Below, piece after piece: positions 4,590 to 42,810 of a DNA stretch of 64,000 nucleotides. The stretch comes from Podarcis filfolensis (Eukaryota): assembly GCA_964270895.1 (NCBI GenBank), contig OZ185435.1. One strand, given 5' to 3'. Position numbers and translations under genes: made by a program. Numbering within the stretch: position 1 is the stretch's first letter; each line of letters begins with the position of its first letter. The notes under the pieces were generated by a model. It did no database searches and was not told the DNA's origin. It saw only the letters and a program-made list of their open reading frames with translations.

Positions 4590-5450
4590 TTAACAGCAGC
4601 CGCCCCGCCCCTTTCCTATCTCCTTGCACGCCTCCAGCCAGCCTTTGCCCTCCTCGCTTCTTCCTCATCTCTCATTCTCCGCCCCCTTCCGCTCCGGAGG
4701 CTCCTCCCTCTTCTCCCGCCCTTCCTACCACCTGAAAGCTTTGCCTCGCCCCTCCCCATCGCACCCCCAAAGGGGCGCAGCAGGCGCACGCGCAGCGCCG
4801 CGGTAAACAAGGGGTGGGGAGGGAAAGGCCGAGGCCCCGCCCACATCGCGGCGTGAACGTTCCACGGGCTTCCCTTCCCTTTTGCTTTCGGGCAGGGGAA
4901 GCGAGCTTTCCCCCTTTCTCGGCGGCGGCGGCGGCGCCTGCGCGCTGGCCTCAACATCCGGGCACTGGGGCAGGATGAATGCTCCTTTCCAAGATGGCGG
5001 CGGAGGGAGGAGGGAAGGAGATGAACGAGATTAAGACCCAGTTTACCACCCGCGAGGGGCTGTACAAGCTGCTGAGCCACTCGGAGTACAGCCGGCCCAA
5101 CAGGGTGCCCTTCAACTCGCAGGGCTCCAACCCCGTCCGCGTCTCCTTCGTCAACGTCAACGACCAGAGCGGCAACGGCGACCGGCTCTGCTTCAATGTG
5201 GGCCGGGAGCTCTACTTCTACATTTACAAGGGGGTCCGCAAGGTAAAGGGACGGGAAGGGGAGGGCGCCGCCGCTCGGAAGGGACTGCCGGCGCCGCGCT
5301 GAGGGAGGCGGCGCGGCCTGAGGAGGGGCGTTCGGGGCTAGCCGGGTGGCATGAAGGGGCGCCCGGCCCTCTCTGGCTGGGCTCACCCTCGCCGAGAGGC
5401 TGCCTGACTGGCGTAACCGCCTCCGCCCCGCGGGAGCTGTCAACAAACAC
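4590..5450 (+). promoter_or_regulatory. CpG island / WDR20 promoter and exon 1
   Basis: Abrupt GC- and CpG-rich block; GC boxes at 4603-4611 and 4835-4842; NRF1-like GGCGCACGCGCA at 4783-4794; (CGG)n near 4920-4935; YY1 motif CAAGATGGCGGC at 4990-5001. Confidence 0.88.
4994..5242 (+). CDS. WDR20: WD repeat-containing protein 20, coding exon 1 (83 codons, MAAEGGGKEMNEIK...YKGVRK)
   Basis: Near-identical to the vertebrate WDR20 N-terminus as recalled; Kozak AAGATGG; donor AAG|GTAAAG; phase 0. Confidence 0.97.
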
Positions 5451-8887: not shown

Positions 8888-9826
8888 TACTTGCATACAT
8901 TATTTTCAATTATTCATAGGGCTATAGGATCAATCTATAGAATCAGATAAATAGTATTTATCTTCCCGTTTGCTATTTGAAGGTCAGTATATATTCATGG
9001 GCTATCCAGATTACTGTGTTCTTGCTTAGCTGCCTACTTCTGAAATCTCATTGTGTTGATTTATTCCCCCTAAACCTGGTTGTAATAACATTCCAAGTGA
9101 AGACTAAAGTCTCATGTCTTTGCACATCACTATCTCTTTGGTTGTAATTTATTAGCATTTATTACTAGTATTTATATACTGTAACTAGTGTAACGGGCAT
9201 TTTACAGAACAGCACAGGTCTCAACATACCTTTAAAACACTTACGATACAATTGCAAATCCTTACGTTAAGCCTGCTCAGGGGCTTTCATGCCCCTAGTG
9301 GAATTCTGGCCTTCAACCCTTTGAAAAAGCAGGCCATGTTTATCAACTGTTACTTCATATTCTAAAGCAAATTGTGAGAACCATGTTCATTTTTTTGTAC
9401 AGAGGTAAAAGGCAGAAATTCCTCTGGGTGTTTTGCAAGTTCTTGAACATGCCTAAAATTAGGTTTTTCAGTTTAAGCTCCTTGAGGCAGAAACTTGTCT
9501 CTTTGTTCTGTAAAACACCATTAACAACAACAACAAAAAAGTTCTTGTGTTCATGTTGATGACGCTTGTACTGAAATAAGAGATACAAGTTAGTGTGGTT
9601 AGCAAGTTGCTGATCGAAACACTGAGTACAAATTCTCCTTGAATCATCCTATTTGTGGTTTTTGGATCCCAGCTTTTGAATCTTTTTTGCTGATGACCAT
9701 AGGCCGAAATGATGGAGCTGAATCTTGGGAGTTCATACTTCATGCTTCCTATTCTTATTTTCCCTACCTGTCTCAGAGGATTGTTAGGCCACAGTGTTGT
9801 TCTGAACTACTGCCAGAAATTAGCTA

Positions 9827-10010
9827 AAACAAAAAAAAAATTTCCTTCCAGTAGCACCTTAAAGACCAACTAAGTTAGTTCTTGGTATGAGCTTTCGTGT
9901 GCATGAGCTCATACCAAGAACTAACTTAGTTGGTCTTTAAGGTGCTACTGGAAGGAAAAAAATTTTTTTGTTTTGACTATGGCAGACCAACACGGCTACC
10001 TATCTGTAAC
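9827..10010 (+). mobile_element. Penelope-like element (PLE) pseudo-LTR fragment with inverted 5' copy
   Basis: Sense part 9906-10010 is almost identical to 11620-11723; inverted part 9827-9905; TSD (C)AGAAATTAGCTA at 9814/9815-9826 and 10010/10011-10022; the GGTCTTTAAGGTGCTAC..GACCAACACGGCTAC end is typical of amniote PLE terminal repeats. Confidence 0.82.
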
Positions 10011-11569
10011 AGAAATTAGCTAGTCACGTTTTGCTACTGGCACAGATCCAACTGCGACCGCACGGAGATCTCTGGATGCCATGTTGCTGACTGGGGAAAG
10101 CAAAATGTCACCTAGAGAAGGATCTGAAATATTTTCCTTGAAGCTTGAATTTGTTTTATTCTGGATTGTTTTACTTGATGTTTTAATGTATTGTAAGCAG
10201 CTTTGAGATTGGTTCTATAAAGTGGTATAGAAATGAAATGAACAAGAACAACAACTTCATGGGGGGGGGATGGTGCCTACACATTCCATTGTGTTGACCA
10301 TAACCTACATTATTCCATTTGGCGATTTCATTATATATCTGAGTTTCTAATACTGTTCTGAATTCTTCAGAGAAAGAGTAGGAAACAAAAATATCAAAAT
10401 AAGTGCTAATTGAAATGATAACCAATTTTATGGCTCTATACTACCCAAAAAATCATCAGGCTCCCCCCAAATATTAAACGTAAGCATTAAATAACTAGTT
10501 AATATATCCAACACCCATGTACCAATCACCTGTGAGTAAATTCGTATTTTCTGTTTTGCTGAAATTATGCAAATTATCTTCATCGTTTGACTTTGTCATA
10601 GCTTGTTTGTAATTGTTAGTGGCAAACACTCATTGCACATTGATAATGTCCTGTGGGAAGTACTGGTATTCTAGGGTGCATATTGTCCTATTCCCAGTTG
10701 CCTGAGAGTACAATTATGTTTAGTGGTTCTTACTTTTGAGCAGAACTGTACAGGACTGCACTGTAAATATCACTTTAGGTAGATTACCTATGCATTGACC
10801 CACTCTGTATTTGCATAGTGCTTTAAAAAGTATTATAAGGTAGATTTTCCTTCCATTTAAATGTGTATGTGAATCCATATTGGATTGTAATCCATATAGA
10901 TAATTGAACTATGTTATTGTTACTTCACAACACGGAATATATGTATGATCTTGCATTTGTCTTTAAATTGATCTGCCTGGGAGGTGAGGAATGGTTTGTT
11001 TGTGTGCATGTGTTGGCCTTAACTTTAGATGTCTTGTAAAGGGCATGTGACTTTGCTAAAATGTAGATTAAAAAAAAAAAAAGAGGTAGCCAAACAGAAT
11101 GAGATATAGGATATTCAAGTATTATAAACCTGTGGGAAGCTGTCTACTTACTGAGGCCCCTGTCCTTAATGTTCTAGTCTGTCAAGACAAACTGCTGAGA
11201 AATACTGCTCTTGAAGTTGCATCTGTTAAACAAGGAATTGATCTCTTTTTTTCTTGCAAAGTATTTGAAAGTCTTAAGCTATTCTGTCATACCAACTGCA
11301 ATGATACATAGAAATAACAATTCATGTATTATGATATAAGCTTTTGTGTGCCAGAGTCCACGTCATCAAATATATTTATATATTTTACTACATTTTTATC
11401 CTGTTCTTCCTTCCAAAGAATCTCAGAGTGGCAATATCTGAAGCATAATATTTAATTGTCAGCCCAGGCATACACATGGTTCAGGAGAAATGGAGAAGGC
11501 AGTGGCCAGAGGGAAACAAAATGCAAAAAGGAAACTTTTGACTTTGAAAGCATGTGCCACAATAAATTG

Positions 11570-11722
11570 CACACTTCTTCAGATACCTGTGTATCTGAAG
11601 AAGTGTGCATGCACATGAAAGCTCATACCAAGAACTAACTTAGTTGGTCTTTAAGGTGCTACTGGAAGAAAAAAAATTTTTTGTTTTGACTATGGCAGAC
11701 CAACACGGCTACCTATCTGTAA
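11570..11722 (+). mobile_element. Young Penelope-like pseudo-LTR with short inverted 5' arm
   Basis: 12-bp TSD CACAATAAATTG at 11558-11569 and 11723-11734; inverted arm 11570-11590; sense repeat 11591-11722. Confidence 0.85.
11591..11628 (+). ncRNA. Minimal type I hammerhead ribozyme motif (PLE-associated)
   Basis: GTAT-CTGAAGA-A-GTGTGC-AT-GCACAT-GAAA-GC-TC^ATAC: helix I GUAU/AUAC, core CUGAAGA and GAAA, palindromic helix II, palindromic AGCU in place of helix III, CUC cleavage triplet ending at 11624. Confidence 0.75.
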
Positions 11723-13444
11723 CACAATAAATTGGTTAGTCTTGAAGGTATCACAAGACTGTTTTTGCTGCAACAGGCTAACATGGCTGCTACTCTGGAA
11801 GTATTTGTGGAAAGGCCATGCTTCTATAATGCTTGCCTCTTTTCTGCATTTGAAGGTAGATGTGTGTCCAATGACATAGGTGGAGGTGAATTTTTTTTTT
11901 AGCCAGCTTTGTGAGTACTGAAGACTAAGGGATCCAAAATACATGTCAGAAATATGGTGGCTGGTTTCTGTTTTTCCATCCCTGAGACTGTATGTTTTAT
12001 TTTGCTTTGTCACAGATAAAACAGTACCTGGACTCATTAATTTATTCTAAATTGCTCTTCTGTCAACCCTGTAAATTTCATGTACCCAGCTGCAACTGCC
12101 ATTGGCTCCTTTGAATATTCTTGAAGGGTGGATTACTGCAGGGGTAGATTGACCTGGTCTTGTGTCTACTTATTTTCACGTGCATCGTTATGATCCATGG
12201 TTGAATTTAAAATTGACAAAACAAGAGTGCATACTTGGGATCTCTGACCAATTAAGACATAAATAATCTGTTTTAAGTAATACTTGGTATGCACCATCAC
12301 TTTTTGCCAGAATCCCAACAACCAGTAGGTCCTAGGCAGATTCCCAGAAACTGGCCAGTTGTTCATCCATGGAGCATAGTCTGTCTTTTGCCCAACCTTG
12401 AATTACTGGATGACTTCTAGAAAAGTTTGCTTTTTAAAAATTATCAGACTGACATATCAGATTGCTGTATGGTTTACCAAATATTAATTTTTAATGTAAT
12501 GTCGCTAGTGTGGGAAGGTTAACAACGTTCATGGGTTAATCATATGAAGTTCTTGACCTGCACTGAGGCATGGCAAATGATTGTCTAATTGTCTTAGTGT
12601 AATACATCTTGGCTTTCTGCATACAGGTTAACTAATTTAACATGAATTAAAGAGTTGCCTGATAAGATGCTTGCTCTTGGGTTAACAGGCAGATAGCCTG
12701 TTATTTGTACCTAGATGTGCTGAGGTACATAAAAGTTTAGACTACGGTTAAAGTGACAAACAGAAATACTTCAGTATCTTTGGCTTCCAGAGTATTGTAC
12801 CTGATGATTTCTTTTCTTTTGTTGGAGTTGAGATGATTTGTTATCTCTGGATGCCTTCACTGTCCATGCAAATTAAGGGTGGGGTACCTCTGCCCCTTGG
12901 GCCCAACGGTGCCTCCCCATTGGCCCATCAGGCCATTTGGGCCAAACATGCCCACTTGCATGATGCCTGTGGGGCAGGAAAAACCTAGCTCAGCTGAAAG
13001 GGCATTTGCAGGCACTGTTGATTAGCTTGTTAACAGTGTCTGAAAAGTGCTGTGCAGATAGCACTTTGAAAGGGGCTTCTGAAAATCCTGTAGGCAATTG
13101 TGATGCCAGGTGATTGACGTGTGGATGGCTCTGCCTACTTGTCAGACTTGACCTGTAAGGGATGGGGGAGATAATGATAAAGCTCTCTGGCCAGGGCCAG
13201 TTCCTCACCCCTGATGTAAACAATAGTTCTCTAGGAAAGCAGATTTATGGTATTGTGTCCATTACTGGAATTGGATGAAATGTGTAACAATGGTCTTGCA
13301 AAACAATGTGGCATCGACACTCTAGATGTGTAAGCAGCTTGCTGCATAATCATACACATGTTTACTCAGAAGGAACATAGAAGTACCACTGTCCTAAGCA
13401 GGGCTAATTCACAAATATAGATAGGACTCGCTCATAAGCGATCG

Positions 13445-26126: not shown

Positions 26127-26262
26127 NNNNNNNNNNNNNNNNNNNNNNNNNNNNNNNNNNNNNNNNNNNNNNNNNNNNNNNNNNNNNNNNNNNNNNNNNN
26201 NNNNNNNNNNNNNNNNNNNNNNNNNNNNNNNNNNNNNNNNNNNNNNNNNNNNNNNNNNNNNN
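26127..26262. other. Assembly gap (136 N)
   Basis: Run of N. Confidence 1.
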
Positions 26263-38013: not shown

Positions 38014-38196
38014 GCTGCTGACTTGAGTAAACCAATAGATAAAAGGATATACAAAGGAACACAACCAACGTGTCATGACTTCAATCATTTAACAGCCACG
38101 GCAGAAAGTGTTTCTCTACTAGTGGGCTTCTCTGCAGGCCAGGTGCAACTTATAGATCCTATTAAAAAAGAAACTAGCAAATTATTTAATGAGGAA
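38014..38196 (+). CDS. WDR20: WDR20 coding exon 2 (61 codons, AADLSKPIDKR...KLFNEE)
   Basis: Acceptor TTTTTGCAG|GCT, donor GAA|GTAAGT, 183 nt, phase 0/0; matches recalled WDR20 sequence. Confidence 0.97.
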
Positions 38197-39044: not shown

Positions 39045-39186
39045 ATCACAGAATTGTAGAGTTAGAAGGGACCACAAAGGTCATCTAGTCCAACCCTCTG
39101 CAATGCAGGAGTCTTTTGGCCAACATGGGGCTCGAACCCATGACCCTCAGATTAAGAGTCTCATGCTCTACTGACTTAGCTATCCC
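39045..39186 (-). mobile_element. Short SINE: tRNA-Lys(CTT)-derived head plus CR1-derived tail
   Basis: Minus strand GGGATAGCTAAGTCAGTAGAGCATGAGACTCTTAATCTGAGGGTCATGGGTTCGAGCCCCATGTTGGCC, followed by GGTTGGACTAGATGACC..CAATTCTGTGAT (CR1 end). Confidence 0.85.
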
Positions 39187-41511
39187 AGATCATCAGCTCT
39201 CCAAAGATGGATCAGCACAATTTGGACAAAATGTGCTGCAACTTGCTTTAGGTATAGTTTATCGTTCATTGCAGTGGTTTGTAAAGAAAATATAACACTG
39301 TGAGAGCAGTTGTAAGTCACAAACCGTGTTCCACAATTTTATACTGGCTTTAATGCCTTGTTACTGATGATGATAGATAATAATAATAATAAAAAAAATC
39401 TGGTGCAACTTGAAAGAAGCATTTTTTTGTTTTAACTTGTTGAGGATTAGTATACCATATGATGGTGAGATGTTTGGCTGCCAGATTTTTAAAGTAGAGA
39501 GATCTGTAATTTAATTTGAATACAAATTCTACTTTAAAGTGAGTCTCTAAAATCTGATGCTTAAAGGTCTTGCCTTCTATCCACTCATAAATGTGCTCAG
39601 CAGTTTGCTATAGCAACTCAGGTAGTTGCAAACACATTCAAAACACATTTGCGCATTTCTAGCACCTGTGTCAGTAAAATCGTTAACTGGAAGTCTAACA
39701 TTGATTATGACTCAGTCGAATTATTCTAGAAGGTGGATCCTTGAGTAACCCTGAATATAAACTGGATTGGGTTTGGGGTTTTTTGGTTCTGTTCTCATGA
39801 ATGTCAGCCATACCTATAAAACCTTCTTTTGTTTCATTGGCTGAAAATGTTTCACTTTTCGGGGGTTCAGGAGGCATATTCCTGAAAGTGGTCACCTTAG
39901 TACAGAATATGGTGGACTTTGGGCCGGGCATGTTTTTTTCTTTGAAGTTTGCTGAGACGAGAGTAGTAAAAAACTCTGCATCTCACTATAAATTTGCTAG
40001 CTTGGATCCTATGATAAGTTGACTTAAGGATGCTTACAGGAGACTTTCTCATCTTCTCCTGCTACCGCCCACATGAGAAAAGACTCTCCAGAACAATGTG
40101 AGATGGGGAAATGTGTGTTGGGGGGTGACATCTTCTGCGGGGAGGGGTAATTGCCGAAAATTGGACTTGGATCCCAGTATAAGCTTTAATGTAAGGGATT
40201 TCACAAAAGGAAAGTGTCCTGTTCTCTTCTTTATTATTAATATTACCATCTTTCTCTCCCCTGCCCTCACACCAGGGAAATGCAAACCTTCTTTGCTTGT
40301 ACTGACTCCAGATTATCAGGGATCCATTAGCCCCTATACCTCAACCCACCCTATTCAGCAGGTTCCCCTGAAGCCCTGAGGGGAAATCAGCTTTTGCCAG
40401 CCTCCTTCCATTGACTCTTCTCTAGACCATCCCAGCATTTTCTAGCTACAGCTGCTCATTTAACATATTGTGCATTGTACACAATTTGTCACGTTGGTGT
40501 ATATCCTATATTGAACAAGACAGGGCAAGAACTCTAGGATAGGGTTTTCACATTTCATAATTTGATGATTTTCCCTCAGTGAGCAGCCTTTACATCACTG
40601 TACTAGTGAAAAAGTATGGTATCATAAATTTTAGTTAAATAAATAAGTTGTGTCCCAGTTGAAGACATACTACAGTATTCCAGAGAGGGAAGGACATTTA
40701 GTTTTATAGCTGGTTACAAAAAACCCCCCTGGTATTACTGTTATTTGCTTCTTCCCTTTTTTGTTGTGATGCTTGAATGGCCTAGGTTGGCAGAATAATG
40801 ATAAAACCCACAGAAGTGCCATTACTATCACTTAAAGATAATGAACCCACAGGGCAAATTGCATTGGTTGTTCATAGAAGCCCAGCACAGGTAATTGGAA
40901 GGTGGAATCCGCAACTGAAAATCTCTTCCATCTATTGTAACTAATTACCTTGAATGTCTAGACATCTACACAAAAGCAATGCAGTATTTGTTAAGTGGCT
41001 CAAAGATTTTAACTTGCCCAGATACTAGATCTCTCTCCCAGATCCTAGGTCCAGACTGTCAAAGTATTTTTTAAGTTGAGCATACTTTGCAATTGCCATT
41101 ATTTTTGTTGAAATAACTTCTACTTGCTTCCTATTTTCACTTCAGTAAGTTAGAGCTCTAATACTTAAAGTGGTCCCATTATTCCACTAAATTACTTCTT
41201 CTATTCTGGATCCTTAAAGCCAGGTTCCTTTTTCCAAGGACAAATTAAGTGGTTGTCTTTTCAGGCCCCCGCCCACCCCCAAATCTATGTCAGATTCAGA
41301 TCATGCTGACCATGGTAATGTTACTCCAGATCTACATGGGGTAAGAAAAGCACACAGTACCTTATAACTGAAGTAGTCATAAGCTTGTTTTCTGCAAGTA
41401 GAATAACTTATGTGTATTAAATGCCGACTGGCAGAAAATGAATTACCTTATTAAATGAAAAATCAAAACTGAGATGACTCTGATGTGTACCTTCTTTCCT
41501 TTGTTTTCCAG

Positions 41512-42810
41512 AGACTAATAGACAAGTCCAGAGTAACTTGTGTAAAATGGGTTCCTGGTTCAGAAAGCCTCTTCCTAGTAGCTCATTCCAGTGGCAATAT
41601 GTACTTGTATAATGTGGAACACAATTGTGGTACCACAGCCCCACACTATCAGCTACTCAAACAAGGAGAAAGTTTTGCAGTCCATACATGCAAGAGCAAA
41701 TCTACACGAAACCCTTTGCTTAAATGGACAGTAGGTGAGGGGGCCCTGAACGAATTTGCTTTTTCCCCAGATGGGAAATTCTTGGCATGTGTAAGCCAGG
41801 ATGGCTTTCTTCGTGTATTTAACTTTGATTCTGTGGAGTTGCACGGTACAATGAAAAGCTACTTTGGAGGGCTGCTGTGCGCCTGTTGGAGCCCTGATGG
41901 CAAATACATCGTGACAGGCGGAGAAGACGACTTAGTGACTGTCTGGTCTTTTGTGGACTGCCGAGTGATAGCTAGAGGCCACGGACACAAATCCTGGGTC
42001 AGCGTCGTGGCCTTTGATCCGTATACCACTAGCGTAGAAGAAAGCGACCCAATGGAATTCAGCGGCAGCGACGAGGACTTCCAAGACCTTCTTCATTTTG
42101 GAAGGGATCGAGCAAACAGCACGCAGTCTAGGCTATCTAAAAGGAACTCTACGGACAGTCGTCCAGTAAGTGTCACATATAGGTTTGGTTCAGTGGGCCA
42201 GGACACGCAGCTATGCTTATGGGACCTAACAGAAGATATCCTCTTCCCACACCAACCCCTCTCGAGAGCAAGGACACACACAAATGTCATGAATGCAACC
42301 AGCCCACCTGCAGGAAGCGGTGGAGCTAATCCAGGCAGTAATGGAAACAGCATCACAACACCTGGGAACTCTGTGCCCCCTCCTCTTCCACGGTCCAATA
42401 GCCTTCCACATTCTGCCGTCTCCAATTCTGGCAGTAAAAGCAGTGTCATGGACGGCGCCATTGCCTCTGGCGTTAGTAAGTTTGCAACCTTATCACTACA
42501 TGATCGGAAGGAGAGGCACCACGAAAAAGACCACAAGCGAAACCATAGTATGGGACATATATCTAGTAAGAGCAGTGACAAACTGAACCTAGTTACTAAA
42601 ACCAAAACGGACCCAGCAAAAACTTTGGGAACGCCCCTGTGTCCCAGAATGGAGGAAGTTCCTTTGTTAGAGCCTCTTATCTGTAAAAAGATAGCACACG
42701 AAAGACTGACTGTGTTAATTTTTCTTGAAGACTGTATAGTCACTGCTTGTCAGGAGGGATTTATTTGCACATGGGCAAGGCCTGGTAAAGTGGTAAGTTT
42801 TAACCCTTAA
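41512..42810 (+). CDS. WDR20: WDR20 coding exon 3 (RLIDKSRVT...PGKV); read-through gives VSFNP* (576-aa isoform), internal donor after 42792
   Basis: Acceptor TTGTTTTCCAG|AGA; WD40 repeats (FSPDGKFLA, WSPDGKYIV, GQDTQLCLWD); GTG|GTAAGT at 42792/42793; TAA at 42808-42810. Confidence 0.97.
   Translation, partial: RLIDKSRVTCVKWVPGSESLFLVAHSSGNMYLYNVEHNCGTTAPHYQLLKQGESFAVHTCKSKSTRNPLLKWTVGEGALNEFAFSPDGKFLACVSQDGFLRVFNFDSVELHGTMKSYFGGLLCACWSPDGKYIVTGGEDDLVTVWSFVDCRVIARGHGHKSWVSVVAFDPYTTSVEESDPMEFSGSDEDFQDLLHFGRDRANSTQSRLSKRNSTDSRPVSVTYRFGSVGQDTQLCLWDLTEDILFPHQPLSRARTHTNVMNATSPPAGSGGANPGSNGNSITTPGNSVPPPLPRSNSLPHSAVSNSGSKSSVMDGAIASGVSKFATLSLHDRKERHHEKDHKRNHSMGHISSKSSDKLNLVTKTKTDPAKTLGTPLCPRMEEVPLLEPLICKKIAHERLTVLIFLEDCIVTACQEGFICTWARPGKVVSFNP
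42448..42504 (+). other. WDR20: Nuclear-export-signal segment MDGAIASGVSKFATLSLHD of WDR20
   Basis: The peptide is read directly; identity with the CRM1-dependent NES reported for human WDR20 is from memory. Confidence 0.65.

Follow-up and report, generated by a model that had tools for sequence, protein, structure and literature searches.

A minimal hammerhead motif in intron 1 of lizard WDR20 is probably the cargo of a short, non-autonomous retroelement

Intron 1 of WDR20 in the lizard Podarcis filfolensis contains a stretch of 38 nucleotides that reads as a minimal hammerhead ribozyme, which raises the question of whether the gene harbors a self-cleaving element that acts on its own transcript or whether the motif was brought in by something mobile, and whether it is able to cleave at all. 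We analyzed a stretch of 64,000 nucleotides (the window), and reads and contigs of four public runs, from the source species and from a related species (the RNA runs being those of the relative), were aligned to positions 11480-11800. The initial annotation had placed the motif on the sense strand of WDR20 intron 1, and the exon coordinates (Table 1) put it there, on the same strand as the gene. The intron is ~33 kb long and contains two insertions of one family, referred to here as insertion A and insertion B, the second of which carries the motif. The same intron is interrupted by an assembly gap (136 N, 26127-26262). In intron 2, the minus strand at 39125-39182 gave an Rfam tRNA match (35 bits, model positions 8-63) for which ARAGORN makes no call; it is probably the head of a tRNA-derived SINE.

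Table 1. Coordinates of the insertions, the hammerhead motif and the WDR20 exons in the window.
Feature	Position	Strand	Evidence or remarks
Insertion B	11570-11722 (153 nt)		12-nt TSD CACAATAAATTG on either side
Left TSD copy of insertion B (12 nt, CACAATAAATTG)	11558-11569	.	direct repeat; junction in the relative's contig
Right TSD copy of insertion B (12 nt)	11723-11734	.	direct repeat; junction in the relative's contig
Inverted 5' arm of insertion B	11570-11586	-	reverse complement of 11591-11607 (100%), 4-nt spacer
Direct ~133-nt family unit in insertion B	11591-11722/3	+	97-98% identical to insertion A; hammerhead at 5' end
Insertion A (same family)	9827-10009	+	13-nt TSD CAGAAATTAGCTA at 9814-9826 and 10010-10022
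Insertion A arms	inverted 9826-9893 facing direct 9906-9973		68 nt, 91% complementary, 12-nt spacer
Minimal type I hammerhead motif	11591-11628	+	sequence, descriptor match, MFE fold of the isolated 38-mer
Helix I (4 bp)	11591-11594 / 11625-11628	+	sequence
C3-A9 core (CUGAAGA)	11595-11601	+	sequence
Extra A after A9	11602	+	sequence
Helix II	11603-11608 / 11611-11616	+	sequence; closed by G-U here
G12-A14	11617-11619	+	sequence
A15.1-G-C-U16.1 (AGCU), replacing helix III	11620-11623	+	sequence
C17	11624	+	predicted scissile bond 11624/11625
WDR20 coding exon 1	~4985-5240	+	
WDR20 coding exon 2	~38020-38195	+	
WDR20 large last exon	41505-42810	+	matches human WDR20 residues 142-569, E = 1e-292

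On the plus strand, the letters of 11591-11628 run GTAT, CTGAAGA, A, GTGTGC, AT, GCACAT, GAAA, GC, TC and ATAC. All of the core positions (C3U4G5A6N7G8A9, G12A13A14, A15.1/U16.1 and H17) are present and stand in type I order. The elements listed in the initial annotation, namely the core CUGAAGA, GAAA and CUC, a 4-bp helix I and AGCU in place of helix III, could all be read in these letters, and the palindromic helix II with a G-U closing pair, replaced by C in the 9827 copy, was likewise seen in the sequence. Helix II amounts to 6 bp on paper and to 5 bp with a CAUG loop in the predicted fold; together with its loop it forms a perfect 14-nt palindrome. Positions 15.2-16.2 are palindromic within AGCU, and a dimeric helix III is possible on paper.

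The closing pair of helix II differs between insertion B and most of its relatives. T11616 is the minority state in the family, in which C makes up 82-88% of the DNA depth and ~95% of the RNA reads, and insertion A has C at this position as well (minus strand, 9894-9905). The C gives the family majority the canonical G10.1-C11.1 pair, whereas insertion B has G-U. Because the neighboring G11617 is replaced by A in 5-12% of the family, the G-U pair of insertion B can be ascribed to decay of the CpG at 11616/11617. By combining the two copies, the initial annotation had arrived at a GGTAT 5' strand and thereby at a helix I of 5 bp, which did not hold up: GGTAT is the reverse complement of ATACC in the inverted arm of insertion A, and the base before GTAT in family reads is T, opposite C11629, so that helix I has 4 bp and not 5.

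A descriptor that calls for CUGANGA, 0-1 extra base, a helix II with 4 bp or more and a G-C or G-U closing pair, then GAA, an ANNU that is self-complementary, H17 and a helix I with 4 bp or more matched once on the two strands of the window, at 11591-11628, and 0 times in 40 Mb of random sequence (first-order Markov, with the composition of the window). Thus, the hammerhead motif is real and far beyond chance. With helix I relaxed to 3 bp, the descriptor also found the validated hammerhead of the Anolis element Poseidon_Ac (PAc) at its tandem-unit junction (File S1, PMC11167929). The initial annotation had proposed a check with the Rfam hammerhead models; all of those in Rfam 15 were run, and they gave no match at gathering over the window and none at E ≤ 10 over 11480-11740. 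Such silence is to be expected for a motif that has no helix III, and the models consequently provide no independent support for it.

The closest published class is that of the minimal hammerheads (min-HHRs) of Penelope-like elements (PLEs), for which Cervera and de la Pena 2014 (PMC4209133) described four recurrent features beyond the search descriptor, i.e., covarying families, a base lying after position 9 and before 10.1, a G10.1-C11.1 pair and a palindromic 15.2-16.2. All but covariation were found at 11591-11628, the G10.1-C11.1 pair being that of the family majority. In PLE min-HHRs, helix II is long and helix I short; such motifs are known from turtle and snakes, and single min-HHRs are inactive while dimers are weakly active (PMC4209133). 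The lizard motif shares with this class the core, the unpaired nucleotide after A9, the 4-nt palindrome, a 6-bp helix II, an open 4-bp helix I and an occurrence in thousands of copies. It differs in the 14-nt palindrome formed by helix II plus loop and in its carrier, which is an ORF-less unit of ~133 nt and not a pLTR belonging to a 3-kb element, and no covariation of the kind seen in PLE min-HHR families is visible because the lizard family is so uniform.

That the motif sits in a recent insertion is documented by a DNA contig of the relative that joins 11557 to 11723 and leaves out the 165 nt between them, with 12 letters that fit on either side, as is expected of an empty site. It follows that insertion B is real, and that it either postdates the split between the species or is polymorphic. 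Its inverted arm covers the 5' strand of helix I, the core and part of helix II, and the arm and two adjoining TSD bases form a perfect 19-bp hairpin with 11591-11609. The direct unit has no ORF, carries an A/T run at 11667-11688 and ends in ...GGCTACCTATCTGTAA(C) in both insertions, neither of which has a poly(A) or microsatellite tail at its 3' end. Across the family, the A/T run varies greatly in length from copy to copy, with 2-4-nt deletions, many substitutions and a dip in depth.

Insertion A breaks off within helix II and retains the 3' half of the hammerhead on the minus strand, with no core on either strand. The length of the inverted arm thus differs by copy, at 17-19 nt in insertion B and 68 nt in insertion A. 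A blastn search of both copies against the window returned no further members of the family, and both insertions are solitary. The inverted arm of insertion A and the direct unit of insertion B are also complementary to each other (9821-9905 versus 11608-11692; 85 nt, 91%) at a distance of 1.7 kb within the one intron, and pairing between them in the pre-mRNA could give a long duplex that loops out 1.7 kb.

The size of the family was gauged from the aligned runs. Summed word depth in 11590-11722 reached 1-3 million, compared with 33 in the flanks for the source species and 11 for the relative, and 6155 and 4366 distinct contigs aligned to the unit. The family comprises thousands to ~10^5 copies in the source species and in the relative, an order of magnitude only since word depth is not a copy number, and two insertions per 64 kb agree with this range. 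Family depth rises at 11590 and drops at 11723, and many contigs are unrelated to one another before 11591 (agreement of 0.38-0.40), from which it follows that the amplified unit is ~133 nt long with the hammerhead at its very start. Some copies extend further upstream, with ...CTTCTGTTTCA before 11589/90.

The arrangement of the copies was evident from joints within single DNA contigs. Go-back joints were found in both species from 11723 to 11591 (with 2-12 extra letters) and also from 11715, 11700, 11675 and 11624 to 11591, and joints to the opposite strand were numerous in the family's DNA contigs. Partial head-to-tail tandems and inverted arms are thus common in the family. Across its members there was no variant at or above 5% in 11591-11615, which left nothing in the helices to co-vary; within the motif, only the CpG pair 11616/11617, C17 (to U) and 11627 were variable. 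Variable positions numbered ~3 of 39 in the motif and ~11 of 94 elsewhere in the unit, proportions that are not distinguishable, and the helices are conserved no better than the remainder of the unit.

Searches for a partner element or an earlier description gave no match. A tblastn search of the window with five short PAc RT/GIY-YIG motifs produced noise only, with no relic of a PLE ORF, and no autonomous RT/GIY-YIG partner sharing the 3' end of the unit was found within the 64-kb window. Full-text literature searches with four 20-25-mers of the unit retrieved no paper, nor did a search combining hammerhead, retrozyme and lizard. Metagenome and viral contigs were also scanned for exact occurrences of the hammerhead, the middle and the 3' end of the unit; the one match, a 21-mer in a marine contig, was dismissed as due to chance.

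The structure of the insertions is that described for PLEs. According to Craig et al. (PMC8557442), PLE insertions are highly 5'-truncated, are often partial tandems, frequently carry at their 5' end an inverted copy that is itself 5'-truncated, and in some cases have a 30-40-bp tail. Insertions A and B and the family contigs, with TSDs, inverted 5'-truncated arms and partial tandems, reproduce this pattern. The proposal in the initial annotation of a young, non-autonomous PLE- or retrozyme-like family was essentially right, given the empty site, the missing ORF, the TSDs, the inverted arms and the partial tandems.

A second point of reference is PAc of Anolis carolinensis. Frangieh et al. 2024 (PMC11167929) reported that its hammerhead cleaves only with protein present, that C3G and G8C each abolish cleavage while the double mutant partly restores it, that insertion in vitro does not require cleavage and that RNA-seq ends are absent at the cut site. 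PAc and the lizard unit described here have in common CUGANGA, one extra nucleotide, a 6-bp helix II, GAA, a 4-nt palindrome (ACGU in PAc, AGCU here), C17 and a helix I of 3-4 bp; the PAc hammerhead lies at a tandem-unit junction, and both are without RNA-seq ends at the cut site. There is, however, no sequence similarity beyond the core, and the PAc motif and the start codon of an RT/GIY-YIG ORF overlap, while the Podarcis unit is ORF-less. PAc cleavage has been demonstrated experimentally, whereas for the present motif it is a prediction.

Short elements with hammerheads offer a further comparison. Metazoan non-LTR retrozymes (Cervera and de la Pena 2020, PMC7229834; Li, Clavereau and Pollet 2026, preprint, 10.64898/2026.07.22.740005) were found in 4 of the 5 reptiles sampled, with a mean consensus of 176 bp, and were proposed to be non-autonomous PLE derivatives (PMC7229834; 10.64898/2026.07.22.740005). 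Like them, the lizard unit is short, low in GC and ORF-less, has a type I hammerhead, occurs as monomers and, in DNA contigs, as partial tandems, and is flanked by TSDs longer than 4 bp. Unlike them, it showed no circular RNA or tandem junction in the RNA runs, and both copies in the window are solitary with inverted arms; the preprint (10.64898/2026.07.22.740005) moreover reported that such elements are depleted in introns, whereas here a single intron contains two copies. The schistosome elements Sm-alpha and Sj-alpha are likewise short, highly repeated retroposons with a type I hammerhead, but they possess a promoter for Pol III and a canonical, loop-bearing helix III, in contrast to the lizard unit with its internal T-runs and no tRNA-like head.

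To address whether insertion B is a working ribozyme, we folded the window sequence and one variant of it, with C at 11616 as carried by insertion A. For the isolated 38-mer and for the 133-nt unit, the MFE fold consisted of hammerhead helices I and II, with an MFE for the 38-mer of -5.3 kcal/mol (-6.8 kcal/mol with C at 11616). In the real context, the hairpin formed by the inverted arm was predicted at -32.4 kcal/mol versus -7.4 kcal/mol for the hammerhead-constrained fold, a gap of 25 kcal/mol, and this hairpin would tie up the 5' strand of helix I, all of the CUGAAGA core and one half of helix II. Dimerization fared no better in the nearest-neighbor model: the AGCU duplex contributes no more than -2.5 kcal/mol, and a double hammerhead joined through AGCU came to -11.1 kcal/mol, as against -13.6 kcal/mol for two monomers and -30.6 kcal/mol for a dimer held by the palindromic helix II. 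In this model the double hammerhead does not come out as the optimum, in keeping with the activity published for the min-HHR class, which is weak and depends on other factors.

In two bulk RNA-seq runs of the relative, inspection of read starts and ends at 11624/11625 revealed no pile-up at any position, and the same two runs contained no tandem or circular (go-back) junctions, the libraries being of a kind not designed for small circles. Family RNA covered both strands about equally, and 98% of the reads continued into unrelated sequence, which indicates passenger transcription. DNA depth of the family was flat across 11612-11644 with no preferred genomic start at the cut site, suggesting that uncleaved RNA is the usual template, as was published for PAc. 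With no tandem partner, a masked core and a G-U pair, insertion B is, as far as these predictions go, probably inert as a ribozyme. The dispersal of self-cleaving motifs into introns suggested by the initial annotation is borne out to the extent that there is an intronic copy on the sense strand; the implied ribozyme at work in this intron found no support.

Two side observations concern the family's transcripts in the relative. RNA-only, strand-specific changes occurred family-wide at 11627, 11636, 11640-11642 and 11653, as A>G in 7-19% of reads with the first mate on the minus strand and as T>C in 5-9% with the first mate on the plus strand; the same changes amounted to 0.25% or less of DNA depth, the RNA and the DNA coming from different individuals. 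The pattern looks like A-to-I editing of dsRNA arising from the family's inverted arms. Separately, ~200-280 RNA reads at 11589 had one common upstream flank (agreement of 0.87-0.92) and ~45-60 reads at 11724 had one common downstream flank (0.85-0.95), and one or a few copies of the family seem to sit in a highly expressed transcript.

Two readings would give insertion B a function of its own, and we consider both very improbable. If it were an active cis ribozyme that cuts WDR20 pre-mRNA, like the conserved intronic hammerheads of amniotes, the intact core, the position on the sense strand of intron 1 and the hammerhead fold of the isolated 38-mer would be accounted for, but the motif has neither helix III nor a tandem partner, single min-HHRs are inactive (PMC4209133), the 19-bp hairpin beats the hammerhead fold by 25 kcal/mol, and the insertion is absent in the relative and so is not conserved. 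Alternatively, the hairpin itself might be the functional unit, as a miRNA precursor or dsRNA element, with the likeness to a hammerhead secondary. The stem of 19 bp is perfect, transcripts of the family show the ADAR-like editing signature, and mir-1 and other miRNA models gave sub-threshold matches on 11560-11617 (31.3 bits, E = 7.6e-5). All of these scores nevertheless fall far short of gathering (45.6 bits in the case of the 31.3-bit match), and the matches were equal on the two strands, which is what a perfect palindrome of any kind produces; a miRNA identity for 11560-11617 was rejected, the scores being below gathering and caused by the palindrome. The arm itself has the character of an insertion scar, since it measures 17-19 nt in B and 68 nt in A, and the locus is absent in the relative.

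A different objection is that the motif could be a coincidence within an ordinary SINE, LINE-moved or Pol III-transcribed, and hence a passenger with no ribozyme ancestry. Consistent with this are the absence of covariation, a constraint on the motif that does not exceed that on the remaining unit sequence, the silence of the Rfam hammerhead models, the failure to find a PLE ORF partner in the window and the 12-13-nt TSDs at AT-rich sites, which are compatible with LINE-mediated insertion as well. Coincidence is hard to reconcile with 0 descriptor matches in 40 Mb of random sequence and with four non-core features that fit the hallmarks of PLE min-HHRs (PMC4209133). A SINE is in turn difficult to square with a unit that has no poly(A) or microsatellite tail, shows no tRNA, 5S or 7SL similarity in Rfam at E ≤ 10 over 11480-11740 and contains T6-T8 runs on both strands that would stop Pol III, while the inverted 5' arms and partial tandems are scars of the PLE type (PMC8557442). 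We regard this origin as quite unlikely.

The reading that we favor, with a probability of roughly 0.8, is that 11591-11628 represents the 5'-terminal hammerhead module of a ~133-nt non-autonomous retroelement that is mobilized in the manner of PLEs, and that insertion B is a non-cleaving copy of it. In form, the unit is close to a pseudo-LTR-only or 'non-LTR retrozyme' element. Following the literature, two motifs in a multimeric transcript of the element would pair through the palindromic AGCU to form helix III, while helix I would form between units of that transcript; cleavage after C17 would be slow and probably protein-assisted, might release unit RNAs and would be dispensable for insertion. 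Insertion B would not be expected to cleave WDR20 pre-mRNA, as it is a lone monomer, is held in a 19-bp hairpin and has G-U at 10.1-11.1, and it has no evident consequence for WDR20.

A bolder version, which appears unlikely, would make the unit a true amniote retrozyme: dimeric hammerheads would cleave its multimers, ligation would give 133-nt circles, and a PLE RT would copy these in rolling-circle fashion from an internal start. If true, this would explain why units start (11591) where the previous unit ends (11723) and why there are copies of more than one unit, and it would mean that, at ~10^5 copies, pairs in introns on the sense strand could occasionally dimerize and cut host pre-mRNAs.

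Taken as a non-autonomous element with PLE-type mobilization, the family adds a lizard case of an ORF-less, hammerhead-bearing element that has reached a very high copy number and was still inserting after the split of the sister species, and it agrees with a recent suggestion that the retrozymes of animals originated from PLE pseudo-LTRs. In annotation, hammerhead-like motifs in the introns of this genome are to be read as the cargo of insertions, usually masked by their own inverted arm, and not as regulatory ribozymes of the host. The family could also be suited to tests of dimer- or protein-assisted hammerhead cleavage and of trans-mobilization by PLEs.
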